Source: Diplonema japonicum (taxonomy: Eukaryota; Protista; Euglenozoa: Diplonemea). From it: a DNA stretch of 64,000 nt. Made by a program: the position numbers and the translations under genes. The notes beneath the pieces were generated by a model. That model had not been told where the DNA came from. It did no database searches and worked only from the letters and a program-made list of their open reading frames with translations. Shown one piece after another: positions 7,073 through 64,000 of this stretch; the first letter of the stretch is position 1; each line of letters starts with the position of its first letter. The stretch spans positions 429,232-493,231 of the forward strand of contig OZ025716.1 in NCBI GenBank assembly GCA_964019335.1. Reading direction: 5' to 3'.

Positions 7073-8319
7073 GAGACGTCACAGCGATACGTGGTAAAGT
7101 CAAAAAGGTATATGAATATGAACCCCCCCCGATATTTTCTTCCAACTATTTAAGACATCTTGTTCTGCAAGTCTTCCTTTGAATACTCCTGTAGGTCAGG
7201 CACCTCCGAGTTTTCCACTCTTCGATACTCATTGTTTACTCCTTCTTCTTTTTTTTCTTGTTTCACGCCTTGTAACTCTAAAACCCGTCAAGCAAAGTCC
7301 GGAATGTTCTCTAGAGGCTATAGAAAGAACTTCCGAAAGACTTCCTTAAGTATTTCTGAAGATTTTAGAAAAGCATGACATTGAGGCATTCATTGGAGGA
7401 CCCGTCTGATTACATTTCGTAAAGCAGATTTTGAAAAGGAATTTGCACTCCAACTGCTCAGAGGAGTTTTTCATTTTTTGGTGGGCTATTGCTAACCACT
7501 TCGTTCTGAATTCTTTTTGCAGTTCTCTTGCATGGTGCCTTATAGAACCTTTCAACATCCTACTCCACGGATCTTGGTGGAGCAGCATACAGCCCTGTAA
7601 TACTGCGGTTCAAGTCCGGGGTGCTGCAGTTATAAGAAAACAGATCGATATTGCAGGCGATTTTGTATGTGCGCAACGATTTGAGTTCATTCCCGCCAGC
7701 AATTTTCTCAGTTGAAAACAGGTTTTAGATATGAGGCTTATGTTAACATTTCTAGTGATTACGCAATGACGGCATTTGTTAGGGTAGAACGACGCTTGTC
7801 GTGTTGACAACGGAGCACCAAAATTATTTTCTTTTTTCTTTGGTGGGTAGTTGCTTTACACATTCTTCCCCGTATTTACGAATCCTCTTTCCTGACCCTA
7901 GCCTTGTAGTGACAGCACACCGCCGTTCTTGCGTGTTCATGTCGTATCTCAGGTTCCTATTATTTATTACGCTCCATATTCGCTAAGTGACCCGCCCAAT
8001 GTCCCAAAGGGGTTATAGGGGGCTATAGGGGAAAAAATGTCAAAAATGCCCAAAGGTTCATTGAATTTTTTTTCCAAAAATTCCATATGTCGAACATGAA
8101 AGAACGGTGAGTTCCAAGGAAGTTCCAAAAAAAATTTTCCAAAAAAAAAATATTGGGGGCCAACCAAAATGACCTTGGAAGTCGCCATGTTGGGTTTTGG
8201 CCATTTTTGCCAAACTTTTGCAACTGGGCACTTTTCCCTTTGAAAAACATGGTTAACAGGGTTCGATCCCAGAAGCCAGCATCTTCCTGACCAGTAGTTC
8301 AGCCGAAAATATTTTCGAA

Positions 8320-51810: not shown

Positions 51811-54082
51811 GAACTCAGGCACACAGGTCATGCCAAGGACCTTCACCCTCTTGTGTTTGTTTCTCCTTCCTTCTAACTTTTCTTTCCCTTATTCGCCACA
51901 CTTCCCACCCCTTAAACCCTTTACCGTTAAGTTGAGAAATTGAATCTTCTGTGTACTTGGGTTCCCCTCCCCTTTTAGATAAAGAAGAGGTACATCAGAT
52001 GTGTTTTGCTTGTCGGTGCACGAGCGCAGAATCTTGGTTACCCGGGGCACCCCGGCTGAGCTGTTCTGCACACGACGCGGGATGCAGAAGCTCGGCCGAG
52101 GCGCCCCGTAATCAAGTGGATCAAGTTCTTGTGCGAACACCGGCCTCCTTTATCTCTCTTATTTTATCTTATTCTCACCCCCTTTCCCCCCGCCATTTTT
52201 GTTTTATACCATTCGCAATATCAAAACTTAACTTTCATTGTGCACCAAAGAAGTAACTACTTGGCGTTCCTCTTTTTTCTTTTGGATTAAAAAGAAAAGG
52301 CTGCTCAGTTTCTTGGAAGAACAAGAAAGAGTTGTGGTGGCATCAGTACTTTCTCAGCTGTTCCGTGTGCAAACAAATGCAATTGAGTGCCACTCTATTT
52401 TGTAACATTTTGTCACTAAAGATCATTCGAGGCAGCACAGTTCTATCTTTTTCTATAGGTTTCTAATAACGCACCCCGTGCTATAAAAACTTTGTCTCTA
52501 CCTATTCGTTTGCATGACCTGTCCGCGAAGTACCCAAAGCCAAGGGAGACACAACTAGAACTTCCAGACAATTTTCTTCTTTTTGTCATTAATTTTTTTA
52601 TTAGCTTTGCCTGTGCAAATAATAAAATGAAGAAAAATAATGAGAATTCTCCCTTCTGACAACTTGCTTAATGCATGAAACAGATCTTTGTGTTGATATT
52701 CTTGACTTCGGTTTTCGCTGCAACAGTTTAAAAAGGAAATGATACCTTTTGCACTTTTCTAATCTTGTAGTCAGTTCAGCCAGGGTGACTAGTGCTCGGC
52801 AGAGGCAGTCAGTTATTCCACTACCAACCGGCAGAGCAACTGTCACCTAGGCACAGACTGACCTTTTAAAACACAAAATGCCCCCCCTACCTTAATTCAA
52901 CTTGACATTATACTAATCTTTTTTTGTTTTTCAGAAAATAGGAAAAAGACAGTTAAGTAAGGGCAAACCCGAGGGGGGGAAAAAGGAAAAAGAAAGGACT
53001 GTATCGAGTCATCAATAGGAATTGCAAGACGAACTCCGGAGGAAAAAAGAACCCCCCCCTCCCCCCATCCCAAGAAGAATGAAGGGAACCATCGAAGAAG
53101 AAGCGGGCAAAAAAGAAAGAAAACCGACAAATCACTTACTGCAAATCTCTCAAGGTTTCTAGGGGAATGTAAAAGGAGGAGAAGGTTCCTCCGACACTTT
53201 TCTTTTTTTTTTTTTGCTCGAACAAAGAAAAACAATAGTCTGTCTTTAAGTAAGTTGATTATCAACAGAAAGAATGGTGGACAGCTGCCTGTCGAAGCTT
53301 TTATCGAATTTCTTTTTCCTCATTCTTTTTTCAGAATTGCACAATAAACGAGTAAGAGAACTTGAAAGAATTCGTCTGTCTTTGTCCCTACTTTAGGTGA
53401 ATACGGTTATCCTTCTATAGGTGAATATCAGCTGACTCTTTTTTGCTTTTTTCCGTTTGTGTTTTTTGAAGAAAGAAAATAAGAACAAAGGAAGAGGAAA
53501 GGTCAATACCGCAAGACCTATTTATTCTCTGACTTTGAATTAAACCAAAAGACTCTCTCCGCTACCCGTAATTTCAAGCTTTTAGCTGTTCTCCTCTCTA
53601 GTTTTTCTTTACTACTTTCTTCCTCTCGCGTACCCTTGCTTTCCCGCGTACCTGCTTTGATTTTCTTTTTCGTTCTCATCCCAGATGAGAAAAAACGGTA
53701 CTACATTGCTCTCACAAACACAAAAGGTGGAACTATGGGACAGTAAGGTAGTGGACTGTTGTGGACAGTTGATACGGTTGAAAGAAACTGAGATACATGT
53801 GAGTTCCTTGCTTGAACTATGGTACGTGTACTGCCGTCACTAAGACTCCTGTGCAAGTTGTTGATGCATGGACAGGTAAGGCTGCGGTTGCTTCGATGAC
53901 ATACCTTAGAGGACATCCTATCGCTCTTCGGGGGCTCTGTCACAGTTGCTGACTTTTCGAATGTTATTCTTGAGGCGCTGGCGGATTACACAAACCCGCA
54001 CGAGAAATAAAGCAACCTCTTGGTTTTTTAAAGTTGGAAAAAAAAAAAGAAGAAGAAAGAAAAAGTTCCACTGGAGGTGGCT

Positions 54083-55153
54083 ATGGCTGGCCAGATTGGT
54101 ATCGCTGGACTTGGATACATGATGGTAAAGCAGTACTTCGCAAGCTTGGAAGGTGGGTCGGACGGAGAGCGCCGCAGCCGCATTGTGGGTTGTGAGGTGC
54201 AGAAGTCGGAAACATACCGCGAGTTCGAGTTCCCGAGGACGGTCCAGGATTTCCAGATCACGTACGCGTGTGGGTGTTCGGCGGTGCAACCTGTTCGTTT
54301 CAAGGGTGGCGTGCTCAAGGGGACTCTGGAAACGGCATGGAGGGTGGTCAAGTTGCAGACCCGGGGGTGCAGACACCACCCGACACCGGGGAAGGAAGGG
54401 GTAGTGGGCATTGCGGCGGGAGCCGGCGCTACCAAGGTGACACTACGTGAGTTCTTGGAGAGGTGCGACGCAAGGATAAGGGCCCCAGTGGGAAAGGTCA
54501 AGGACCTGATCAAAGTGAAGGCGTGGGTGAGGGATGGAAGGAAGGTCACCCTCGACGTCTACGAGGGGAGGGGGCCCTGCGAGAAGGAGACGAGGCGCAC
54601 TGTCCAAGACCATCTGCGGAAGATGGGTGTTGAAGAGGTCGACCTGCAGTCAGCGGTGGTGACGGTCCCGGGGTTGTTCGAGGACGTCTCCTTTGAGAGG
54701 TACCTTGGGCTGTTGGCCCGGAAGAAGGAGGAAGACAGGGAGAGGCGGCCTGAGGTGGTTGCCACGGACCTCCCCACCCTGGAAGAGCTGAAGTGGAGCA
54801 AGAAGGACAAGAAGCGGGCCCGGGCCCGATCGGCCAGTACTGACTCGGATTGTGTGGAGGGTGGCTACATCTATCTGAAGGGTACGGGGGCGGATGGCAC
54901 CGTGGTCGAAGCCAACATATGCAGGGGTGAGCTCAAGGGGATGACCGGGCCCCAGTTCAAGTTCTTGGCGGAGCACAGGTTGATGGAAGAGCTGGGGAGC
55001 GACGACCTGGTGCGGGACACGGTCAAGGTGCGCAACAGGGAGAACTGGGCCCCGGTGAACAGTGCGGTGGCTTGGCTGCAGCTCGAGTCGGGGAGGGCAC
55101 GGGTGGGGCCCATACCCCACAAGAAGAGGTCCAAAGGCTCGCTGGCCAGATAG
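54083..55153 (+). CDS. Hypothetical protein (~356 aa) with G-rich, retroelement-like codon usage
   Basis: Uninterrupted ORF, no recognisable domain; composition resembles the adjacent retrotransposon. Confidence 0.6.
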   Translation: MAGQIGIAGLGYMMVKQYFASLEGGSDGERRSRIVGCEVQKSETYREFEFPRTVQDFQITYACGCSAVQPVRFKGGVLKGTLETAWRVVKLQTRGCRHHPTPGKEGVVGIAAGAGATKVTLREFLERCDARIRAPVGKVKDLIKVKAWVRDGRKVTLDVYEGRGPCEKETRRTVQDHLRKMGVEEVDLQSAVVTVPGLFEDVSFERYLGLLARKKEEDRERRPEVVATDLPTLEELKWSKKDKKRARARSASTDSDCVEGGYIYLKGTGADGTVVEANICRGELKGMTGPQFKFLAEHRLMEELGSDDLVRDTVKVRNRENWAPVNSAVAWLQLESGRARVGPIPHKKRSKGSLAR

Positions 55154-55857
55154 GCCAGCGGGGGTGTGGGGGGCTGGTCCCCCCCCCCCCCCCGCCATAG
55201 GAAGATGTGAATTTTTTTTTTTTTTCTGAGAAAAAAAAAAAGGGAAAAATAAAAGAATAGGGAACAGGTGCTACAACGGCCAGGCTAGATAGAACCACTT
55301 AGATTTTTTTTTTTTTTTTTTCCTTTTTTTTTTTTCTTTTTGTTTTTCTTTTTGAAGTGGAACCATCTCGGTCGACGTTTTTTTTTTTTCTTTTTTCTTT
55401 TTTCTTTTGTGGTGATGTGTTTTTCCTGTTTTTGATTTTCTTCTTCCCCGCTCTATGCTTTTTCGCATGGACATTGGTCACTCTGCCCCTTTCCCCTTTT
55501 TTGATTCTCCCTCTTTCCCCCTCCTAAATTTTACCCCCTGCCCCACTCATTCCTCCCTAGTATGTTTTTGAATTTGCCTCTTCTTCTTTTAAGCCTTTTT
55601 TGAGATTTTTATTTTTGAATTTTTATCATTTGGAGTTGCTTCTTCTTCTTCCCCTCTCCCTCCCATAAAGAAAAAGAGAAACCCATGCCTTCCTCCCAGG
55701 TTGGAACTTGATTGTCTGTTTTGGAATATTTTTATTTTCTCTTAAGGTTTATCGCGCCTTGTGTGTCTTTTGAAGGAAAAAAAAAAAAAAAAAAAAAAAA
55801 AAAACATTCTCAAGTCCCCCTTTTTATTTATTTTCTCAAGTCCCCCTTTTTAAAAAA

Positions 55858-55896
55858 AACCAACGATTCTAAAGCTACAGTTTCTGTACTTTATTG
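55858..55896 (+). ncRNA. Spliced-leader (mini-exon) sequence, 39 nt, diplonemid type
   Basis: AACCAACGATTCTAAAGCTACAGTTTCTGTACTTTATTG followed by GT. The 39-nt length and 3' CAGTTTCTGTACTTTATTG match kinetoplastid/diplonemid SL exons. Confidence 0.9.
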
Positions 55897-56037
55897 GTCG
55901 TCTGTGTTTTTGTTGGTGCCTGCTGCGTCCGCTCGGTGTCCGTTCGTCGTCGTCTGGGGGGGTTGTTTCGGCCCGGCCCGCCTGCCGTTTAGCAAAGGAT
56001 CCCCTCCCCCCTCAACACAAAAAAAAAAAAAATAAAA

Positions 56038-57114
56038 ATGGACCCTAGACGAAACGTCGTCGGAGACCGCCGCCCGCAGGAGGAACGCCTACGAGAGACG
56101 CCGACCAAGCCGACCACCCGACCAGACCGAAATCTGGCCGGGCAGTATGACCCCTCCCCTCCCCTTAGATCCCCTCTAGATGTCGTCAAAAATAATAAAA
56201 AACATAAAAAAATAGAACCACCCGCAGCCAGCGCGCCCGCTCCCGATTCCGCAGCCGCCACCGCCACCCGCCTGAAGACTGAGAGGGGGGAAAAAAAGAA
56301 AGAAGGAGGGTGGGTGCTCACGGGAGGGGACCACCCCCCGGGCTTAAGAACAGGCCCAGCTCCCACCCACCCAGAGACCTTGCTCTCGGGGGGGTGGGAG
56401 TCCATTTCGGGGAACAAAGGGAGGGAAACCCTCCAATTTGGTTTCAGGTGGGTGGGTCCCCGTGCCAAAGTGCGCCGCACCACCCCGATCCCAGAGGGGG
56501 CCAGGGGTTGGGTGGCGGAGGTGGCCACCGCAGCGGGGCTGGGGATCACCCCAGACCAGGTGCTCGTAAATCGATACGAGCCTGGGTGTGGAATCGCCCA
56601 CCACACCGACGACGTGAGGTTGGGGCCAGTGGTCCTCATCCTCTCGTACGGTGCAGAGACCACGATGGTCCTGAAGAAGGGGTCCAGGGTATCGAAGTAC
56701 CTGGTGCCTCCCTTCACCTGGGCCATTCTGGAGGGTGAGGCCCGCTACGAATGGACCCACCACATCCCCGAAGGGTGTTCTTCGGGCTCCAGGGTGTCGA
56801 TCACCCTGCGGACGGTTGGCTGCCCCGTGCCCCTCCCCTCCCCCTCTGTGTCCTCTGTTGAGGAAATAGAAAAAAAAAATACTGTGTTTGTGGGGAGAAG
56901 GAAAGAGAGTGCGAAGGAGGTGTCCCCGAGAGAGGGAGGCGCCCCTTCCCCCCCTTCCTCCGCTTCTTCTTGTTCTTCTTTCTCTTGTTTATCTGTCCCC
57001 CCTCTTGTAAATTCCCCCCTTGTAAACCCCCCCATTGTAGATTCCCCCCCCTTTGTTTCTTCCCAGGGGGAGGACAAGAAAAAAATAGGTAAGGGTGCAA
57101 AAAAAAATAGGTAA
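56038..57114 (+). CDS. Element ORF A: stand-alone AlkB-family 2OG-Fe(II) dioxygenase
   Basis: RETLQFG, DQVLVNRYEPGCGIAHHTD (HxD), LSYG, GEARYEWTH (distal H), RVSITLR (RxxxxxR); domain ~56308-56817. Confidence 0.85.
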   Translation: MDPRRNVVGDRRPQEERLRETPTKPTTRPDRNLAGQYDPSPPLRSPLDVVKNNKKHKKIEPPAASAPAPDSAAATATRLKTERGEKKKEGGWVLTGGDHPPGLRTGPAPTHPETLLSGGWESISGNKGRETLQFGFRWVGPRAKVRRTTPIPEGARGWVAEVATAAGLGITPDQVLVNRYEPGCGIAHHTDDVRLGPVVLILSYGAETTMVLKKGSRVSKYLVPPFTWAILEGEARYEWTHHIPEGCSSGSRVSITLRTVGCPVPLPSPSVSSVEEIEKKNTVFVGRRKESAKEVSPREGGAPSPPSSASSCSSFSCLSVPPLVNSPLVNPPIVDSPPFVSSQGEDKKKIGKGAKKNR

Positions 57115-57226
57115 GGGTGCAAAAATGGTAAGGGTGCAAAAAAAATAGGTAAGGGTGCAAAAATGGTAAGGGTGCAAAAATGGTAAGGGTGCAAAAAAAA
57201 TAGGTAAGGGTGCAAAAAAAAATAAA
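57086..57226 (+). repeat. Seven tandem GGTAAGGGTGC-A(n) units between ORF A and ORF B
   Basis: Units start at 57088, 57110, 57127, 57148, 57165, 57182 and 57203. Confidence 0.9.
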
Positions 57227-57227
57227 A

Positions 57228-60200
57228 ATGGACCCTAGACGAAACGTCGTCGGAGACCGCCGCCCGCAGGAGGAACGCCTACGAGAGACGCCGACCAAGC
57301 CGACCACCCGACCAGACCGAAATCTGGCCGGGCAGTATGACCCCTCCCCTCCCCTTAGATCCCCTCTAGATGTCGTCAAAAATAATAAAAAACATAAAAA
57401 CCAGGCAATCTGGTTGGGCACAGAGACCGCGGTTTTGACCGCCGCTGCTACAACCACGGCCGCCCCAGCCACCCTGAACGCCGCAGCCGACCCTGCCGCC
57501 CTAATCGCCGCAACTGAGACCGCCGCAGCCGCCCCTGCCGCAGCCACGACCGCCGCGACCACGACCCCTGCAGCCGACCCTGCTATTGTTGAAGAGGGAA
57601 GAAAAGAGGGAGAAAAAAAGGGGTGGGTACTGGTGTATGGTGAACACCCTCCCGGGTTGAGGACGGGCCCGGCCCCTGCCTTCCCGAAAGCCCTGCTTTC
57701 AGGAAAGTGGGAGGCCCTGTCTGGGAACTCAGGGAGGGAGACCCTCCAATACGGGTACCGGTGGGAGGGGACGAACGCCAAGGTGCGCCCCACCACGGGG
57801 ATCCCAGGGGGGGCGGAGGGGTGGGTGAGGGAGGTGGCCGCCGCCGCAGGGCTCGAGGTGGTCCCCAACCAGGTACTTGTCAACAAGTACAAGTCTGGTT
57901 GTGGGATTGCCGCCCACAAGGACGACGCGAGGCTGGGACCGATTGTCCTAGTCCTCTCGTACGGAGCCGAGACCACAATGGTCATGAGGAGGGGGGACAG
58001 GGTGGCGAAATACCTGGTGCCCCCCTTCTCATGGGCATTGTTGGAAGGTGAAGCGAGACACCAGTGGACGCACCACATCCCGTCCGGGATGTCCACTGGT
58101 GTCAGGGTGTCGATCACCCTGCGTGCGGTAGGCCCCAAGCTCACCCGCACACCCCAGGAAGACCCATCCCCTGGGTTAACAGACGAACCCCCTTTTTTAG
58201 ATCCCCTTTTTTGTGGGCAAGGGGGGGTGGCACTCCCAAGAGAGGATAGTGCCCCACCCGCCCCCCTTTTTTTTTTAGAACCCTCTTCGGAGGAAAACAG
58301 ACCCTCTTCGGAGGAAAATAGAGAGAAAGGGGAAGAGGTGGCACTCCCGAGAGAGGGTGGTGCTCCTCCCCCCCATTTGTCCCCCCCTTTTTCATTTTTA
58401 GAGCCCTCTCCAGAGGAACCCTCCACGGAGGTAAAAAACAGACCCTCTTCGGAGGAAAAAAAGGCAGAGGGAGAGACAGCACGCCCGAGAGAAGGTAGTG
58501 CCCCTCCCTCTCTGCCCCCCATTTTTTCTGGACCCTCTACGGAGGTGTACACCCTGGTCCCCAAGGGCCGGGGGCTTTTTTTGAGGGTGGAAGGGAAAGA
58601 AAAAAAAAAAACAAACAAGGAGGAACCTTTTTTCTTTTCAAACAACCAGGGGGACCCAGCACCCACCCCCACCGCCCGCCTAGGTGTGGTTGGGGCGGAG
58701 GCTGCGAGCGACGTGAGAGCACCACTGCACACCCTTGTGAGAAGACAGAAAAGAGCCCCCTGGATTGCCATGGGTGGCAGGGAACCTAAGCCAGCGCCCA
58801 AGCGGAAGAAGAACAGGAGGAGGCACAGGAGCGAAACGGCCCTTCAGAGGCGTCGGGAGAAGAGGACCAAGGCGAGGGAGGGGGCGAGGGAGGCTGCCAG
58901 ACAGGAGAAGAAAAGGCACCGTCGTGCGAGGAAAGAAGGGAGGAGGAGGGCCCGCAGAGAGGAACACGAGGCCGCCCTGGAACAGAAGCCAGATGACCCT
59001 GCAATGGGGCTGAAGCGGACCGAGGTGGGAACGCCTGGAGCCCAACCCCTGGCACCCAGAATCCCGGCACCTGGGGCTGCAACCGGCACAAGGAGGCACC
59101 GCAGACGGACGGGACACAGCAAGGAAGGGGTGAGATGGGAGCACCTGGGGGTGTGGGCCTGGGTCGCCCTGGTCTCCCTCTTGCTGATCCCAGGGGTGAG
59201 GCAGGTGCTGGGGGCGGGCATCGGGATGGCCCCCTCCTTCCTGCATGCGGCAGTGTTGTGGAAGAGGCCGGGGAGCGACAGGAGGACCACCCGCAGGTCA
59301 AGGGTACAGGTGGGGCCCCGAGGGGATGAATGGTCCGCCGGGGAGCTCGCTTGGCTAGCAGTAGGGGGCACTCTGGTGGGAAGCACTTCAGTTTGGATAG
59401 GGGGGCTGATGTCGCTCTGGGCCATGTCGGAAGTGATGGTGTGGAAAGCTGGTGCTGACCCGACCCAGAGATTCGGACCGGTAAAGCTGAGGAAGACAAG
59501 ACGCGGATCGAGAGGTCACTACCTGCCGGTGTACTTGGGCCCGCCTAGAAGCTCAAGACGCAGAAAAAAGAAGGAAGACGCCAAGCAAGCGGCGAAGGAA
59601 CGAGCCGAGACGGAGGATCAGGCCGAACACCTGGACCCCTTTGCGGACTTGACGCTGGCAGGGGACGCGTTGCAAGGAGGTGGTGACCCTCCCCCCATGG
59701 ATTTGGATGATGAGCACATGGAGGCGCAGAAGGAGGGGGAAAAAGAAGGATCAGACAAACATCAATGCCGGATGGAAGACTGCTCTTTCCGCACCAGTGT
59801 GGCAAGCTGTCTAGTTAAACACCTCAATGCGGTCCACCATCATTTTGTGAAACAAGAGCAGGCGAGGAGCATGAAGGTGAACCTCTGTGGAACGTGTGCT
59901 GCGGCGTGCTCGTCGAACCAGACGCACTGTGCACTACACAGGCAGCGGAATCTGTGGAACCCCGACAAACAACCCAGGGCCGGCAAGTCAGTGGACGAGA
60001 TCATGAAGAGCTTCAAGCTGACGAGGAGATCGACGGAGAAGGACGGGAACTGCATGTTCCACGCCCTGGCCGGTTCGCTCGGGGAAGCCTACGGCGACCA
60101 CACCCACATCAGGAGCGAGGTTGTAGAATGGATGAAACACCGGGAGGAGCACTATGCCCCGTTTTGCAGTGAGGGTTGGGACCGGTACTTGGAAGGGATG

Positions 60201-63200
60201 GGCACAGCAGCGACGTGGGGAGACCACTTGTGCCTGGCAGCCGCAGCACAAGCGTTTGGCCGCACGATACTCGTGGTTGCTGGGGGGAACAACCCAGTCC
60301 TGATGATAGGGGAGTACAACTCCGACCACGAGAAGGTGGTGGTGCTGGCGTACAACGGCAACCACTACGAGTATGCAGTCGGAGAGGAGGAGTCGATGAT
60401 GATGCTCCTTGATGAGTCCCAATCGGTAGCTCTACAAAAGGCAGGTAAGCAACCCTCCGAGGCCCCGGGTGAGGACATCGGGGAGTGGGACATAATAGAC
60501 CGTGCGATCCCTGGATACGGGAAGGCAGGGGTGTTGGACCAGATGGGGGCAAGGAACCAGCAATTCCTGTACTGTCCGGTGGCGAACTGCGCTAGGTCGA
60601 AGTGCAAAAGCACGACCCCGTTCAACTCGACAAGGGTATGGAAGTGTCACCTGGATGGGCACCTGGAGAGTGATGAGATCCCGGAGAGCGTTCTGAGGAG
60701 ACTGGACCTCGAGAGGTGCCTGGTGTGCAGGGGCTGTGTGTGGAAGGGTCAGGGGTGCCACGACGAGTGCAAAAAGGCGGTGCGAAGGGAAGGGGAATAC
60801 ACGACCCCCCCGCCGGCCCCGACGAGGACCGAGTTACCCAGCCTGGAAACCATAGCCGCCATGAACGTCACGACCATGGGGTCGATCCCGACGAGCCTTC
60901 AAAGACTGTGGGGGCTTACCCTTAAGCACACTCTGGGCCGAGCGGTGAAGGACAACACAGAAGAGGCTTGGCTGCTGGTGGCGATGCTCCCCAAAGCCTG
61001 CCTGTGGAAGAAGAGGGGAGGGAAGAAGCGGGACAAGGAGACGGAGCTGAGTGTCCAGGCCAGATTGGAGGAGTGGGAGAAGGGAAATTACATGGCCCTC
61101 TGGAATAAGCTGGAATCAGGTGAGAAGGGGGAACCTAAGAACGACGAGGTCTCTAAGGTCGCCAGGGCCACGGAACTGTGCAGCAAAGGGAGGTTCTCGG
61201 CAGGAAACGCGGCGCTTGTAGCCCAGGGGCTGGCGGAAGACAATGAGGATTGCTGGAGAGCGCTGCAGAGCAAACATCCAGAGCCACTACACCCCCAATG
61301 GGACAACCCGGCGAAGACGAAGGAAGCGGTAGAAGTCTTGCCAGAAGAAGTGCTGGACGCAATCAGGGACTTCCCGAGGGGGACTGCTGCGGGACCGACT
61401 GGTCTGAGAGCCCAGCACATCAAGGACGCGGTGGACGGAGCTTTTGAGTCTCAAGGCTGTTTGATGTCGGTGACGAGGGCAGTCAACGCATTAGCTAGAG
61501 GCACGGCCCCTAGGGAGGTGGCTCCGCTGATGGCAGGGGCGAACCTTGTGGCCCTCAAGAAGAACGACAGGGACGTGCGGCCCATAGCCGTTGGGGATGT
61601 GCTGCGTCGGCTGGTGGGGAAATCCCTTGTGAAGAAGATCGCTCCGGAAGTGGCCTCTTCGTACCTGAAAAGAAAGGCGGCCAGGTGGGGGTATCGGTCC
61701 CTGCTGGAATGGAGGCGGCTATACACACCATCAGGCAGTATGTGGACAGGGAACGGGGCAACAAGCAGGAAAACAAGGTGATCCTCAAGATCGACTACGC
61801 CAACGCCTTCAACAGTGTTTGTCGGAGGCAGCTGTGCTCACAGGCCTATGAGCAAGCGTCGGGGCTGTATGCGTGGGCCGATTGGTGCTACAGGGTGCCC
61901 TCCCAATTATACTACAACGGAAAGGTGATTAAGTCCCAGGAAGGGGTGCAACAGGGGGACCCGATGGGACCGCTGCTGTTCTCTCTGGCCATCCAACCCC
62001 TGGTGAACAAGATAAGTGAAGACTGCAACCTGGACATCCTCCAGTTCTACCTGGACGATGGCGTCCTTGTGGGGAATGTGGATGAAGTGAGAAAGGCGTA
62101 CAACATCTTGTGTGAGCTGAGCGGAATGATAGGGCTGAAAGTGAAACCCCAGAAGTGCGAGCTCATATGGGTTAGTGGCGACCTCCCCCAGACAGTGGAG
62201 GACACAGGCTTCGATGGCCTGACAGAAGAGAATTTCCACAAAGAGAGGAACTTCATGCTCCTGGGGGCGCCGATAGGATCGCCGGAGTACACGCAAGCCT
62301 TTCTGAACAAACGCTTGGACGCGCTGGAAGAGAACTTCGACATGCTGACCAAGGTGGGGAGGCAGACAGGGTACACACTTCTCCGGTATTGCAGCTCATA
62401 CAGCAAACTGGTGTTTTACATGAGAGTGGTCCCAGACTCGCATGTGGGAGGGGTCATGCACAGGTTCGACGAGATGGTGCGGAAGACGATGTCGAAGGTG
62501 TGCGGCATGCAGTTCGAGAACGGGTCGAAAGAATGGCAGCAGGCGAAACTGTCCGTAAAAGTCGGTGGGCTTGGGATGAGGAGCTGCCAGGAGCACCTGC
62601 GCGCGGCCAACATGGCTTCGAGGGCGTCGACGATGAAGCTGTGCAAGGAGCTGGATCCCAAATACGAACATGGGCTGGAAGGGGGTGTATGGGGGAGCTG
62701 GCTCGAGTGGTTCAACAGGACGAAGGGCGGCATGCAGATTACACCCGACATGGTGGCCAAGGCCCCCCACATCTGCAGCCAGAGGTGGCTCTCTAGGGTG
62801 CTTGATGAGAAGGCGCTGGAGGACCTCTTGGCGAAAGCAGATGCACGCTCGAGAGCGAGGTTGATGTCGGAGTCAATGCACTATGCGGGAGCGTGGTTGA
62901 CGGCGACGCCTGACTTCTACAACCAGCTGTCGGACAACGAGTTTGGGGCTCTGATCAAGTGGTGGTTGGGGGCTCCGGTCTACAAGCAGGGTGAGAGCTG
63001 CCACGACCCGAGGTGCAAGACTGAGGGGATGGACGTATGGGGTGACCATGCCCAGGGATGCGGCAACGCCAGGATTGCGAGGCACGACCGGGTGAAGGAG
63101 ACCATCCACAGACACTGTCAGTGGGCCGGGGTGAGCGCAACGATGGAGAAGACGGGGCTGATCCCGGGGTCGTCCCAGCGCCCGGCGGACGTGTTCTTCC

Positions 63201-64000
63201 CAGGTGGGGTGGGGGGTTCCCGCCCAATGGCTATGGACGTGGTCATCGTGCACCCGAGGAACGAGTCTTGTGTCAACCAGGCGGCGAAGACTGCGGGGTA
63301 CGCAGCGGCGAAGGCGGAACACTACAAGCGCCAGAAGTATGAGGCGGAGCTCGCCAAGACACGCGTGGCCTTTGTACCTTTCGCGATGGAGACCTTTGGG
63401 GGGTTCGGGGAGGCAGCAGTCTACCTCACGAAGAAACTGTCCAGGAGCATAGCTGCGCGGGCTCACGGGGACAGAGTCTCGATACACAGGCGTGTGGTCC
63501 AAGAGGTGTCAACGGCCATGATGAGATCGATAGCAGGGGCGCTGTTAGTCAAAGGGCCTGTACAGTTGGATCCAGGGCCCCCGGTACCGGACGGCGAAGA
63601 GGAAAAAAAGGACAACGAGGAAGCGAACAACGAACCCAACACTGAATCCAACACTGACCTCACAGAGGACTCCTTCGGCAATGAAAAAACCACCGAAGCT
63701 GAGGAGTCGTCCGAGAGGGAAGTGAAGGGACAGGGAGGCGGACCCCCAATCACGGTGGCCCACCAGCTGGATGCCCTTCTGGAGCAGACGAAGAAGGACC
63801 TGGACGCCCGAATGCAGCAGCAGCGAAAGGCGGAACCGGAGGAGGGTGGAACACAAGGGAACCCGCAAACCCGCAAACCCGCAAACCCGCAAACCCGCAA
63901 ACCCGCAAACCCGCAAACCCGCAAACCCGCAAACCCGCAAACCCGCAAACCCGCAAACCCGCAAACCCGCAAACCCGCAAACCCGCAAACCCGCAAACCC
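57228..64000 (+). CDS. Element ORF B polyprotein: AlkB - basic region - hydrophobic segments - C2H2 - OTU - C2H2 - RT - CCHC - RLE; one -1 frameshift near 61667; no stop in window
   Basis: AlkB 57621-58133; OTU DGNCMFHAL...WGDH...NHYE ~60012-60371; C2H2 fingers ~59760-59838 and ~60570-60665. The frame starting at 61667 contains QGDP (61952), YLDD (62048) and RPAD (63179) and stays open to 64000. Confidence 0.85.
63860..64000 (+). repeat. (AACCCGCA)n octamer tandem array, at least 17 units, cut by the window edge
   Basis: Perfect repeats from 63860 to the end. Confidence 0.95.

Follow-up and report, generated by a model that had tools for sequence, protein, structure and literature searches.

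A telomere-repeat-targeting, CRE/SLACS-like retrotransposon with AlkB and OTU domains at a chromosome end of Diplonema japonicum

Why should an element that moves by reverse transcription need a nucleic-acid demethylase of its own? The question is raised by the end of a 64,000-nucleotide window of the Diplonema japonicum genome (contig C69, positions 429232-493231, reaching the end of that contig), where a sequence-only reading had described a single element at positions 55858-64000 with two AlkB-type dioxygenase domains, an OTU protease, two zinc fingers, a reverse transcriptase (RT) and a restriction-like endonuclease (RLE or REL), associated with the spliced leader (SL) in the manner of CRE1, SLACS and CZAR. 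We compare the window with the rest of the same genome assembly (62.5 Mb), whose contigs carry C-numbers here and whose compared loci or copies carry L-numbers; feature coordinates are in window numbering and all lie on the + strand. We find that positions 54065-64000 are a chromosome-end array, in which three pieces of a telomere-repeat-targeting, CRE/SLACS-like RLE non-LTR (non-long-terminal-repeat) retrotransposon are joined. The precedents that we found for AlkB in mobile elements and viruses come from RNA viruses of plants and from a single young LTR lineage of orchids, and an old, selected AlkB fused to an RT offers a natural experiment on the question with which we began.

The element, its domains and its copies

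We read the architecture of the element from natural uninterrupted copies. A complete element is about 9.3 kb long and consists of a 39-nt copy of the SL exon, a 141-nt 5' untranslated region (UTR), a single open reading frame (ORF) of 2804-2990 aa, a T-rich 3' UTR and an A tail. The copies fall into two families; an uninterrupted family-1 ORF lies at L003:1359-9770 (- strand, 2804 aa) and an uninterrupted family-2 ORF at L030:727-9696 (- strand, 2990 aa), L031 likewise having 2990 aa, and the ORF of L033 is also uninterrupted at 2827 aa. Along the ORF follow AlkB, a C2H2-like finger, OTU, a second C2H2-like finger, the RT, a CCHC-RLE and then about 700 aa without a recognisable domain. A Pfam scan of the intact ORFs finds PF13532, PF02338 and PF00078 in that order in both families and no nuclease domain other than the RLE motifs described below. 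The C-terminal 685-824 aa of either family have no Pfam match even at E up to 10; in the ESM Atlas the C-terminal 685 aa returned nothing and the RT-RLE region only generic RVT_1 clusters.

In the window, the AlkB domain (an Fe(II)/2-oxoglutarate dioxygenase) that belongs to the family-1 copy is at 57621-58136 (PF13532, above the cut-off with E 1.8e-13, aa 172-305 of the ORF at 57210-61781), with its HxD motif at 57906-57926, WTHH at 58065 and RVSITLR at 58104. The other AlkB belongs to a family-2 fragment, and has its core at 56308-56811 (PF13532, E 8.5e-11, aa 128-258 of the ORF at 56038-57114), with HxD at 56593-56613, WTHH at 56752-56769 and RVSITLR at 56791-56811. The HxD...H and RxxxxxR residues are kept in family 1, in family 2 and in the Diplonema homologues, and in an alignment of 112 sequences H101, D103 and H153 are invariant while R164 and R170 are at least 90% conserved. 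The closest match by sequence in the PDB is ALKBH8 (E 2.2e-9). An AlphaFold2 (AF2) model built from the 112 sequences reaches pLDDT 93 and pTM 0.88 (one built from a two-sequence alignment, at pLDDT 32, was unusable), and Foldseek matches it with probability 1.0 to ALKBH6, ALKBH8, NMAD-1, Ofd2, ALKBH2, ALKBH3, ALKBH5 and AlkB at TM 0.6-0.75; the fold predicted by this model is the AlkB-type double-stranded beta-helix. A profile search of 1.84 billion representatives gave a best E of 2.8e-20, with compact AlkBs of 170-190 aa as the nearest relatives, and no close AlkB relative at E 1e-30 or better. The Diplonema AlkB proteins surfaced only by exhaustive profile search; a word-seeded protein search returned nothing for the AlkB domain alone, and nothing for the N-terminal half against long proteins.

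The OTU cysteine protease or deubiquitinase-type domain occupies 60042-60374 (PF02338, E 2.8e-12, aa 945-1050; 47.7 bits for a cut-off of 23.3), with DGNC at 60042 and NHY at 60354. Family 1, family 2 and Diplonema all retain its catalytic Cys and His, and its best PDB matches are OTUD5 and OTUD3 (E 4e-6). On either side of it stand the two C2H2-like fingers, both of which fit C-x4-C...H-x3-5-H. The one at 59760-59843 (HQCRMEDC...NAVHHH) is recognised by motif only, and family 2 does not preserve the N-terminal half of it; the one at 60570-60662 (YCPVANC...CHLDGH), which together with a CxxC...HxxC knuckle (CLVCRGC...CHDEC) takes up 60570-60776, is conserved in family 2 and in Diplonema, the whole block being kept in family 1, family 2 and the Diplonema protein P0292.

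The RT core lies at 61566-62170 (RPIAVGD ... FYLDDG) and is broken by a frameshift in the window copy, where RVT_1 is matched at E 1.5e-14 in the frame-3 stretch 61514-64000; in the intact copy L003 the match covers aa 1447-1650 at E 2.8e-16. FYLDDG is found at 62045, YLDD is kept in both families and in Diplonema, and the RT matches in the PDB are R2 proteins only (E 8e-8). The break itself is due to a private 2-nt insertion at 61668-61669, an extra AA that makes CTGAAAAGAAAGG out of what is CTGAAGAAAGG elsewhere; it is missing from 10 other copies, and the form that lacks it appears in contigs of the public runs X1 and X2 as well. We considered a programmed frameshift and rejected it, since the break sits within the RT and is private to the window copy. 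Downstream of the RT, a CCHC zinc knuckle and a PD-(D/E)XK restriction-like endonuclease (C..C..H..C, RHD, E, RPAD, MDV, K) are recognised by their motifs at 62996-63352, with CCHC at 62996-63061, RHD at 63077, RPAD at 63179 and MDV at 63230. The CCHC-RHD-E-(R/K)PxD-D motifs are kept in the alignment of family 1, family 2 and Diplonema. Their order matches the SLACS/CRE REL consensus quoted in PMC12857005, and several spacings deviate from it (C-x4-C in family 1, C-x9-10-H, RPAD for (R/K)PD, and 15 residues to the last D).

Much of the domain content given by the sequence-only reading is borne out by these results. The AlkB domains with intact HxD...H and RxxxxxR motifs, the OTU with its catalytic DGNC...HY, the RT (recovered in the frame-3 continuation) and the CCHC plus PD-D RLE nuclease (motifs at 62996-63250) are all where they had been placed, and the frameshift in the ORF is genuine. 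Both C2H2 fingers that it named are visible as motifs, and neither the window copy nor the intact ORFs give a Pfam zinc-finger match. Its description of an RLE-type, CRE/SLACS-like non-LTR element with integral AlkB and OTU also agrees with the uninterrupted ORFs, in which AlkB and OTU precede an RT and a C-terminal CCHC-RLE.

How far AlkB belongs to the element can be judged from its copies. Genome-wide there are 98 matches to PF13532, about 80 of them in element copies at contig ends and about 8-10 in internal host-type genes, and AlkB is present in every full-length copy examined; the concern that it might be confined to the window copy thus finds no support. At least eight internal host-type genes (C4:41710, C53:354548, C38:471583, C27:546329, C81:84091, C5:214988, C62:280681 and C22:82756) outscore the element AlkB against PF13532. 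Between the two families AlkB is the best-conserved domain, with 71% aa identity, a ratio of non-synonymous to synonymous substitution rates (dN/dS) of 0.24 and a synonymous divergence (dS) of 0.92. The RT follows at 54% identity (dN/dS 0.26), then the RLE at 37%, OTU at 33% (dN/dS 0.59) and the C-terminus at 23%. Family-1 copies share 97.7-100% identity in the AlkB core, and 21 of 25 AlkB segments are intact; the private variants, 9 synonymous and 16 non-synonymous, are as expected from decay after insertion. From these comparisons we take AlkB and OTU to be integral, conserved domains of the lineage, with AlkB evidently under purifying selection, and AlkB predates the split of two families whose RT domains share 54% identity. 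Where the 5' UTR ends and across the first 66 codons (56024-56210 and 57214-57400 in the window), the families are near-identical, with a proportion of synonymous differences (pS) of 0.02, which suggests that they recently exchanged 5' ends, whether through recombination or through template switching. Assembled contigs of public runs from 11 studies also contain the element or most of it. These runs (X1-X18) bear several organism labels, and one labelled as a coral metagenome holds a small share.

The same architecture is found in Diplonema papillatum. KAJ9442719.1 (P0273; 2635 aa, named 'SLACS 132 kDa protein, partial') carries AlkB at 290-380, OTU at 1047-1128 and RVT_1 at 1510-1736, and between the first finger and the end of the RLE it aligns collinearly with the element ORF (34% identity, 1353 aa). 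Its AlkB region matches as well, at E 2e-14. D. papillatum homologues at 34-45% identity are named 'SLACS 132 kDa protein' by NCBI. P0292 (KAJ9439003.1) and P0288 (KAJ9464156.1) have an extra C-terminal ubiquitin C-terminal hydrolase (UCH) domain about 1,500 aa past the RT, which gives the element there a second module of deubiquitinase type. In an RT-RLE tree of 51 sequences, built from relatives without named CRE references, the two families are sisters (SH-aLRT 99) and jointly sister to the D. papillatum group (95); the next relatives in this tree have no AlkB or OTU. In the D. papillatum genome paper, 'SLACS reverse transcriptases' and 'a dozen AlkB-type genes' are separate entries, with no link drawn between them (PMC10161547), and our comparison indicates that some of these 'AlkB genes' and 'SLACS' proteins belong to one element. 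Our literature search found no report of AlkB in a non-LTR retrotransposon, nor of an AlkB-OTU-RT-RLE architecture.

Telomere repeats, the spliced leader and the make-up of the array

Where does the element insert? Contig ends in this genome are capped by (CCCGCAAA)n, which in 5' to 3' direction runs out to the terminus. A 32-nt search pattern of four repeats has 5,536 overlapping matches, and (TTAGGG)4 occurs nowhere in the whole assembly; the telomere repeat of the genome appears to be the octamer CCCGCAAA. A literature search for this octamer returned nothing relevant, and the genome has one TERT-like ORF, at G000:C41:533974. The strand that bears the 3' end of the telomere is C/A-rich, the reverse of the usual G-rich rule; octamer arrays are found, for example, at L003:1-620 and L007:4976-5441, and variant 9-mers occur at the proximal ends of the arrays.

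The target of the element is this repeat, (CCCGCAAA)n. Telomere repeats stand immediately 5' of the SL in L002, L019, L038 and L040 and immediately 3' of the A tail in L003 and L049. There are at least 42 matches to the family-1 AlkB region (71-100% identity), and 40 of the 42 are no more than about 45 kb from a contig end, toward which they are oriented, the two internal exceptions being on C115 and C64; every terminal copy has its 3' end toward the terminus. The repeats also occur at a second kind of joint: in 3'-truncated copies, (CCCGCAAA)n arrays adjoin the element at no fewer than 13 different internal positions, usually with A, AA or CAAA microhomology. Because reverse transcription cannot yield a 3' truncation, these joints imply erosion or breakage followed by addition of repeats to the 3' end. 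The head-to-tail arrays of the element erode from the end and get re-capped by telomere repeats, and the joint at 63861 of the window (...GGGAA|CCCGC) is one of these truncation-recap joints. We also considered that (CCCGCAAA)n might merely be the 3' tail of the element and rejected this, as the arrays join many internal points of 3'-truncated copies. The genome is a system in which telomerase repeats and a retrotransposon jointly form chromosome ends. On contig C24, family 2 forms a full-length head-to-tail tandem array (G000:C24:7178-45984) with a period of 10,659 bp, SL copies at 7178, 17837 and 28496, and two copies with identical uninterrupted 2990-aa ORFs.

What is the origin of the SL at the 5' end of the element? 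An Rfam scan of the whole window matched no family, so we recognised the SL by comparison with the SL RNA genes of the genome itself. The true SL RNA genes (L010, L011 and L016) form tandem units of about 350 bp, with an intron beginning GTACCCAATC and a T-run terminator. In the element, a 39-nt exon copy identical to theirs (AACCAACG...TTTATTG; 55858-55896 in the window) runs into the element's own 5' UTR (GTCGTCTG...) and not into the SL intron GTACCCAATC. The proposed association with the SL as in CRE1, SLACS and CZAR therefore fails: the SL exon is fused to the element's UTR without an SL intron, and the copies sit in telomere repeats. A further candidate, in which the SL and the sequence after it would be an SL RNA gene serving as promoter, was rejected because the intron differs.

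Other copies join the SL at alternative points within the 5' UTR; in L002, for instance, the junction comes after ...CGTTTAG. At L012:516, L017:293, L018:300 (-) and L024:301 there are relic leaders, in which a complete SL precedes the final 16 nt of another SL (TTTCTGTACTTTATTG). Such relics are what one would expect from an SL-headed copy in the genome that underwent a second round of trans-splicing, with the AG within its SL as acceptor. At the 3' end, A tracts run from 7 to about 55 nt (at least 32 nt in L041, about 55 nt in L007). The SL-UTR joins, the alternative and relic junctions and the 3' A tracts point to trans-spliced, polyadenylated mRNA as the template, and the copies have the appearance of cDNAs of mature mRNA.

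The SL exon is found 207 times genome-wide at no more than 2 mismatches, and its copies are very unevenly altered. Among the matches listed, 50 of the 52 one-mismatch copies have their mismatch at SL nt 1 (T, C or G), nt 1-4 vary in a few copies (CCCC, CGCC, GGGG), and nt 5-39 are faithful; the copies nearly always reach nt 2, and the errors are concentrated at nt 1-4. Several unrelated 5' UTRs and ORFs at internal sites also begin with an SL copy (L015, L021, L023, L025 and L027; L022, L024, L028 and L029), and in L026 it is the SL RNA that has been retro-copied, together with part of its intron. Retroposition of mRNA seems to be widespread in this genome.

With these elements of structure in hand, the end of the window can be taken apart piece by piece. 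It begins with the 3' end of an upstream, 5'-truncated family-1 copy (54065-55857), which carries the C-terminal 358 codons of the polyprotein, a stop at 55151-55153 and a T-rich 3' UTR ending ...CCCCCTTTTTAAAAAAAA. In five other loci the sequence 54065-55858 comes 685 bp past the point equivalent to 63861, at 98.4-98.7% identity, and in L003, L007 and L049 a 3' end of this type directly adjoins telomere repeats or poly(A). Then follow the SL exon copy that marks an element 5' end and the 141-nt 5' UTR (55897-56037), which is common to the SL-headed copies L003, L005, L006 and L014. From 56038 to 57099 extends a 3'-truncated family-2 fragment with a start codon, an N-terminus and one AlkB (the PF13532 match at E 8.5e-11 given above); by BLAST, window positions 55852-57099 are 99.4% identical to the 5' end of the family-2 tandem copies L030 and L031 on C24. 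At the joint with the next piece, Tandem Repeats Finder (TRF) detects an expansion of about 7 units of 17-19 bp (AAAAATAGGTAAGGGTGC; 57081-57218), where the family-2 copies have a single GGTAAGGGTGCA.

The third piece, at 57214-63861, is a family-1 copy truncated at both its 5' and its 3' end, in which AlkB, zinc finger, OTU, zinc finger, RT and CCHC-RLE are encoded. It begins 14 nt before the ATG at 57228 without an SL of its own, and over 6.65 kb it is 99.7-99.8% identical to copies on C92, C9, C105, C80 and C16. It ends where telomere repeats cut it; the remainder of the window (63862-64000), up to the end of the contig, is (CCCGCAAA)n on the broken element (17.6 perfect copies by TRF), and other copies extend about 2.5 kb beyond the cut. 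In canonical copies, by BLAST, the SL and 5' UTR (55858-56210) run straight into the sequence seen from 57401 onward, with no extra AlkB unit. The two AlkBs that had been assigned to one element are thus the product of a junction between a family-2 fragment and a family-1 copy, canonical copies having one, and the span 55858-64000 is not one element: it joins two fragments, the second of which lacks its 3' part beyond the telomere cut at 63861. Upstream in the window, all long ORFs are carried by the + strand.

What the AlkB and OTU domains may do

Taken as a whole, the explanation that we regard as probable is that of a telomere-targeting RLE element whose AlkB demethylates the element's own RNA template, with the bases of the cap-4 structure as the most specific candidates, and whose OTU is a deubiquitinase. 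The RLE would nick the TTTGCGGG strand, and the TTT-3'OH at the nick would pair with the poly(A) tail of the template and prime reverse transcription. Such priming would place the 3' end outward, opposite to MoTeR and FoTeR. AlkB, made within the RT polyprotein, would oxidatively strip base methyls from the element's own RNA; its likeliest specific targets would be the cap-4 base methyls that block Watson-Crick pairing, dimethyl-A at SL nt 1 and an N3-methyl pyrimidine at nt 4, and their removal would let the RT copy the leader. OTU would shield the proteins of the element or its ribonucleoprotein (RNP) as a deubiquitinase, rather than act as a processing protease. This role of OTU is the one we favour from its nearest PDB matches, OTUD5 and OTUD3, and from the extra UCH domain in D. 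papillatum homologues.

AlkB-family enzymes can remove N6-methyl, N6,N6-dimethyl and N3-methyl groups, and the dimethyl-A and m3U of cap-4 both block base pairing. To our knowledge, the kinetoplastid mRNA cap is the most heavily base-methylated known. In trypanosomatids the base methyls of cap-4 are at nt 1 (dimethyl-A) and nt 4 (m3U) (PMC5491325). The concentration of SL errors at nt 1-4, in copies that reach nt 2, fits an RT meeting a modified cap, and leader copies with such errors link cap-4 chemistry to reverse transcription in a concrete and testable way. The specific version, in which AlkB strips the cap-4 base methyls from the SL, is nonetheless one that we hold to be doubtful; if true, it would be the first retroelement-encoded eraser of a cap modification. 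We are slightly more hesitant about the joint picture, that of an ancient euglenozoan telomere lineage which uses mature cap-4 mRNA as template, brings its own cap-4 base demethylase and, with a telomerase repeat of C/A-rich strand, builds or buffers chromosome ends; we offer it tentatively.

Several observations weigh against this account or parts of it. SL nt 1 is miscopied in most retro-copies, and dimethyl-A, if it is the substrate, would often still be present when the RT arrives. The other SL-headed families at internal sites have no AlkB match nearby, which means that copying the SL needs no AlkB in cis, though AlkB might act in trans. The SL of this organism has C, not U, at nt 4. ALKBH8, with ALKBH6 the closest solved relative of the domain, is a tRNA hydroxylase and not an mRNA demethylase. 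The high identity of AlkB between the families may partly reflect recombination, its dS of 0.92 comparing with 1.3-1.7 elsewhere and the first 66 codons being near-identical. The placement in the CRE clade is provisional, made by motif architecture and by the automatic 'SLACS' names given by NCBI.

Some of these points speak for a broader role of AlkB. It might be a general eraser of RNA marks or a repairer of RNA damage (m6A, m1A or m3C at any site of the element RNA, perhaps including m6A in the poly(A) tail, from which priming starts) that counters host control by RNA methylation, without specificity for the SL cap, a model that has been proposed for the AlkBs of plant flexiviruses and of an orchid Ty3/Gypsy lineage. 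Existing SL-headed retro-copies without AlkB and the continued miscopying of SL nt 1 are as such a model would have it, and the predicted fold matches the whole AlkB family about equally, ALKBH5, ALKBH3 and ALKBH2 included. There is also precedent, in that a Gypsy-encoded ALKBH5-like protein demethylates m6A RNA in vitro (PMC9289625) and flexivirus replicases have AlkB followed by OTU (PMC544882). Against it stands the distribution: in our sample of RT relatives, the lineage with AlkB has so far turned up only in Euglenozoa, and dinoflagellate and metagenomic RT relatives are without AlkB. We see a general eraser as a possible alternative that we would not expect to prevail, with about the weight that we give to the cap-4 version. 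It is improbable that AlkB works instead on DNA and, in the course of target-primed reverse transcription, repairs or demethylates either the cDNA while it is single-stranded or the telomeric target, N6-methyladenine and alkylation lesions being examples of what it would remove. Its tethering to a protein that works at a DNA nick would suit such a role, and the structural matches include NMAD-1 and, judged as DNA-binding by their structure titles (dsDNA or ssDNA with methyl lesions), ALKBH2, ALKBH3 and E. coli AlkB; however, the top matches by sequence and structure are ALKBH8 and ALKBH6, and the domain is compact, with nearest relatives of about 170-190 aa.

A further alternative is that AlkB, OTU or both are catalytically dead, or serve as structural or processing modules, OTU being a cis-acting polyprotein protease like the Ulp1-like protease of NeSL and Utopia. 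Cysteine proteases in RLE elements do have precedent (PMC4640811), a polyprotein of about 2800 aa plausibly needs processing, and OTU is weakly conserved between the families, at the 33% identity and dN/dS of 0.59 reported above. Yet the catalytic residues of AlkB and OTU are all kept in the two families and in Diplonema, the dN/dS of AlkB is 0.24 and the UCH domain of the D. papillatum copies points to ubiquitin chemistry, so that we rate this reading marginally below even the improbable action on DNA. That one copy captured a host gene by chance, or that the assembly is chimeric here, would at first sight be suggested by the 8-10 or so internal host-type AlkB genes and by the chimeric junction in the window itself. 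The copy census refutes it: about 80 copies have AlkB, in two diverged families with uninterrupted ORFs of 2804 and 2990 aa, AlkB is in the D. papillatum homologues, and the element recurs in the public runs from 11 studies, which leaves this explanation with a negligible chance of being right.

Likeness to known elements and viruses

The telomere-targeting element shares with the CRE clade (CRE1 and CRE2 of Crithidia, SLACS of T. brucei and CZAR of T. cruzi) a euglenozoan host, strict specificity for a tandem repeat, and an RT followed by a C-terminal CCHC plus RHD...E...(R/K)PxD...D endonuclease without an AP endonuclease; its C2H2-like motifs before the RT are candidates for the N-terminal zinc fingers of the clade. 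It differs in its target, which is the telomere repeat whereas the CRE clade inserts at nt 11/12 of the SL RNA gene, in that the SL at its 5' end is a complete copy of a trans-spliced leader, and in an ORF that is 2-3 times longer and includes AlkB and OTU. In its choice of target it resembles the fungal elements MoTeR (Magnaporthe oryzae), FoTeR (Fusarium oxysporum) and Cnl1, which have RT and REL, insert in telomere repeats only, in fixed orientation and in head-to-tail arrays, and are linked to truncated and re-capped chromosome ends (PMC12857005, PMC7367193). In MoTeR and FoTeR, however, it is the 5' end that faces the terminus, whereas here it is the 3' end (PMC12857005), and the fungal telomere elements are without AlkB, OTU and spliced leader.

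For the accessory domains the nearest parallels are of other kinds. Orchid Ty3/Gypsy 'paALKBH5-like' elements and the replicases of Flexiviridae and Closteroviridae are alike in having an AlkB-family dioxygenase that is encoded by the mobile element or virus itself. The orchid elements are LTR retrotransposons whose AlkB stands in a separate ORF2 and was recently taken from a plant ALKBH5-type gene; in the Diplonema element AlkB is fused into a non-LTR RT polyprotein and, unlike these orchid and viral AlkBs, is closest to ALKBH8, ALKBH6 and compact AlkBs. The parallel with flexivirus replicases that had been drawn from the window is correct, in that Flexiviridae group 2 have AlkB and then OTU upstream of the polymerase, the order of the element (PMC544882), although they are plus-strand RNA viruses; the flexivirus AlkB-OTU module has an independent counterpart in a retroelement. 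NeSL and Utopia provide the likeness for OTU, with a cysteine protease of ubiquitin or ubiquitin-like deconjugase type N-terminal to the RT of an RLE element (PMC4640811), the protease being Ulp1/C48 rather than OTU and AlkB being absent.

The leader copies, finally, have a likeness outside mobile elements. In dinoflagellates, as Slamovits and Keeling reportedly described in 2008, SL-bearing cDNAs are recycled into the genome and leave relic spliced leaders. These are SL-headed genomic retro-copies with truncated relics that arise in repeated rounds via the AG inside the SL, as in D. japonicum; they differ in that they derive from ordinary genes and not from an autonomous element.

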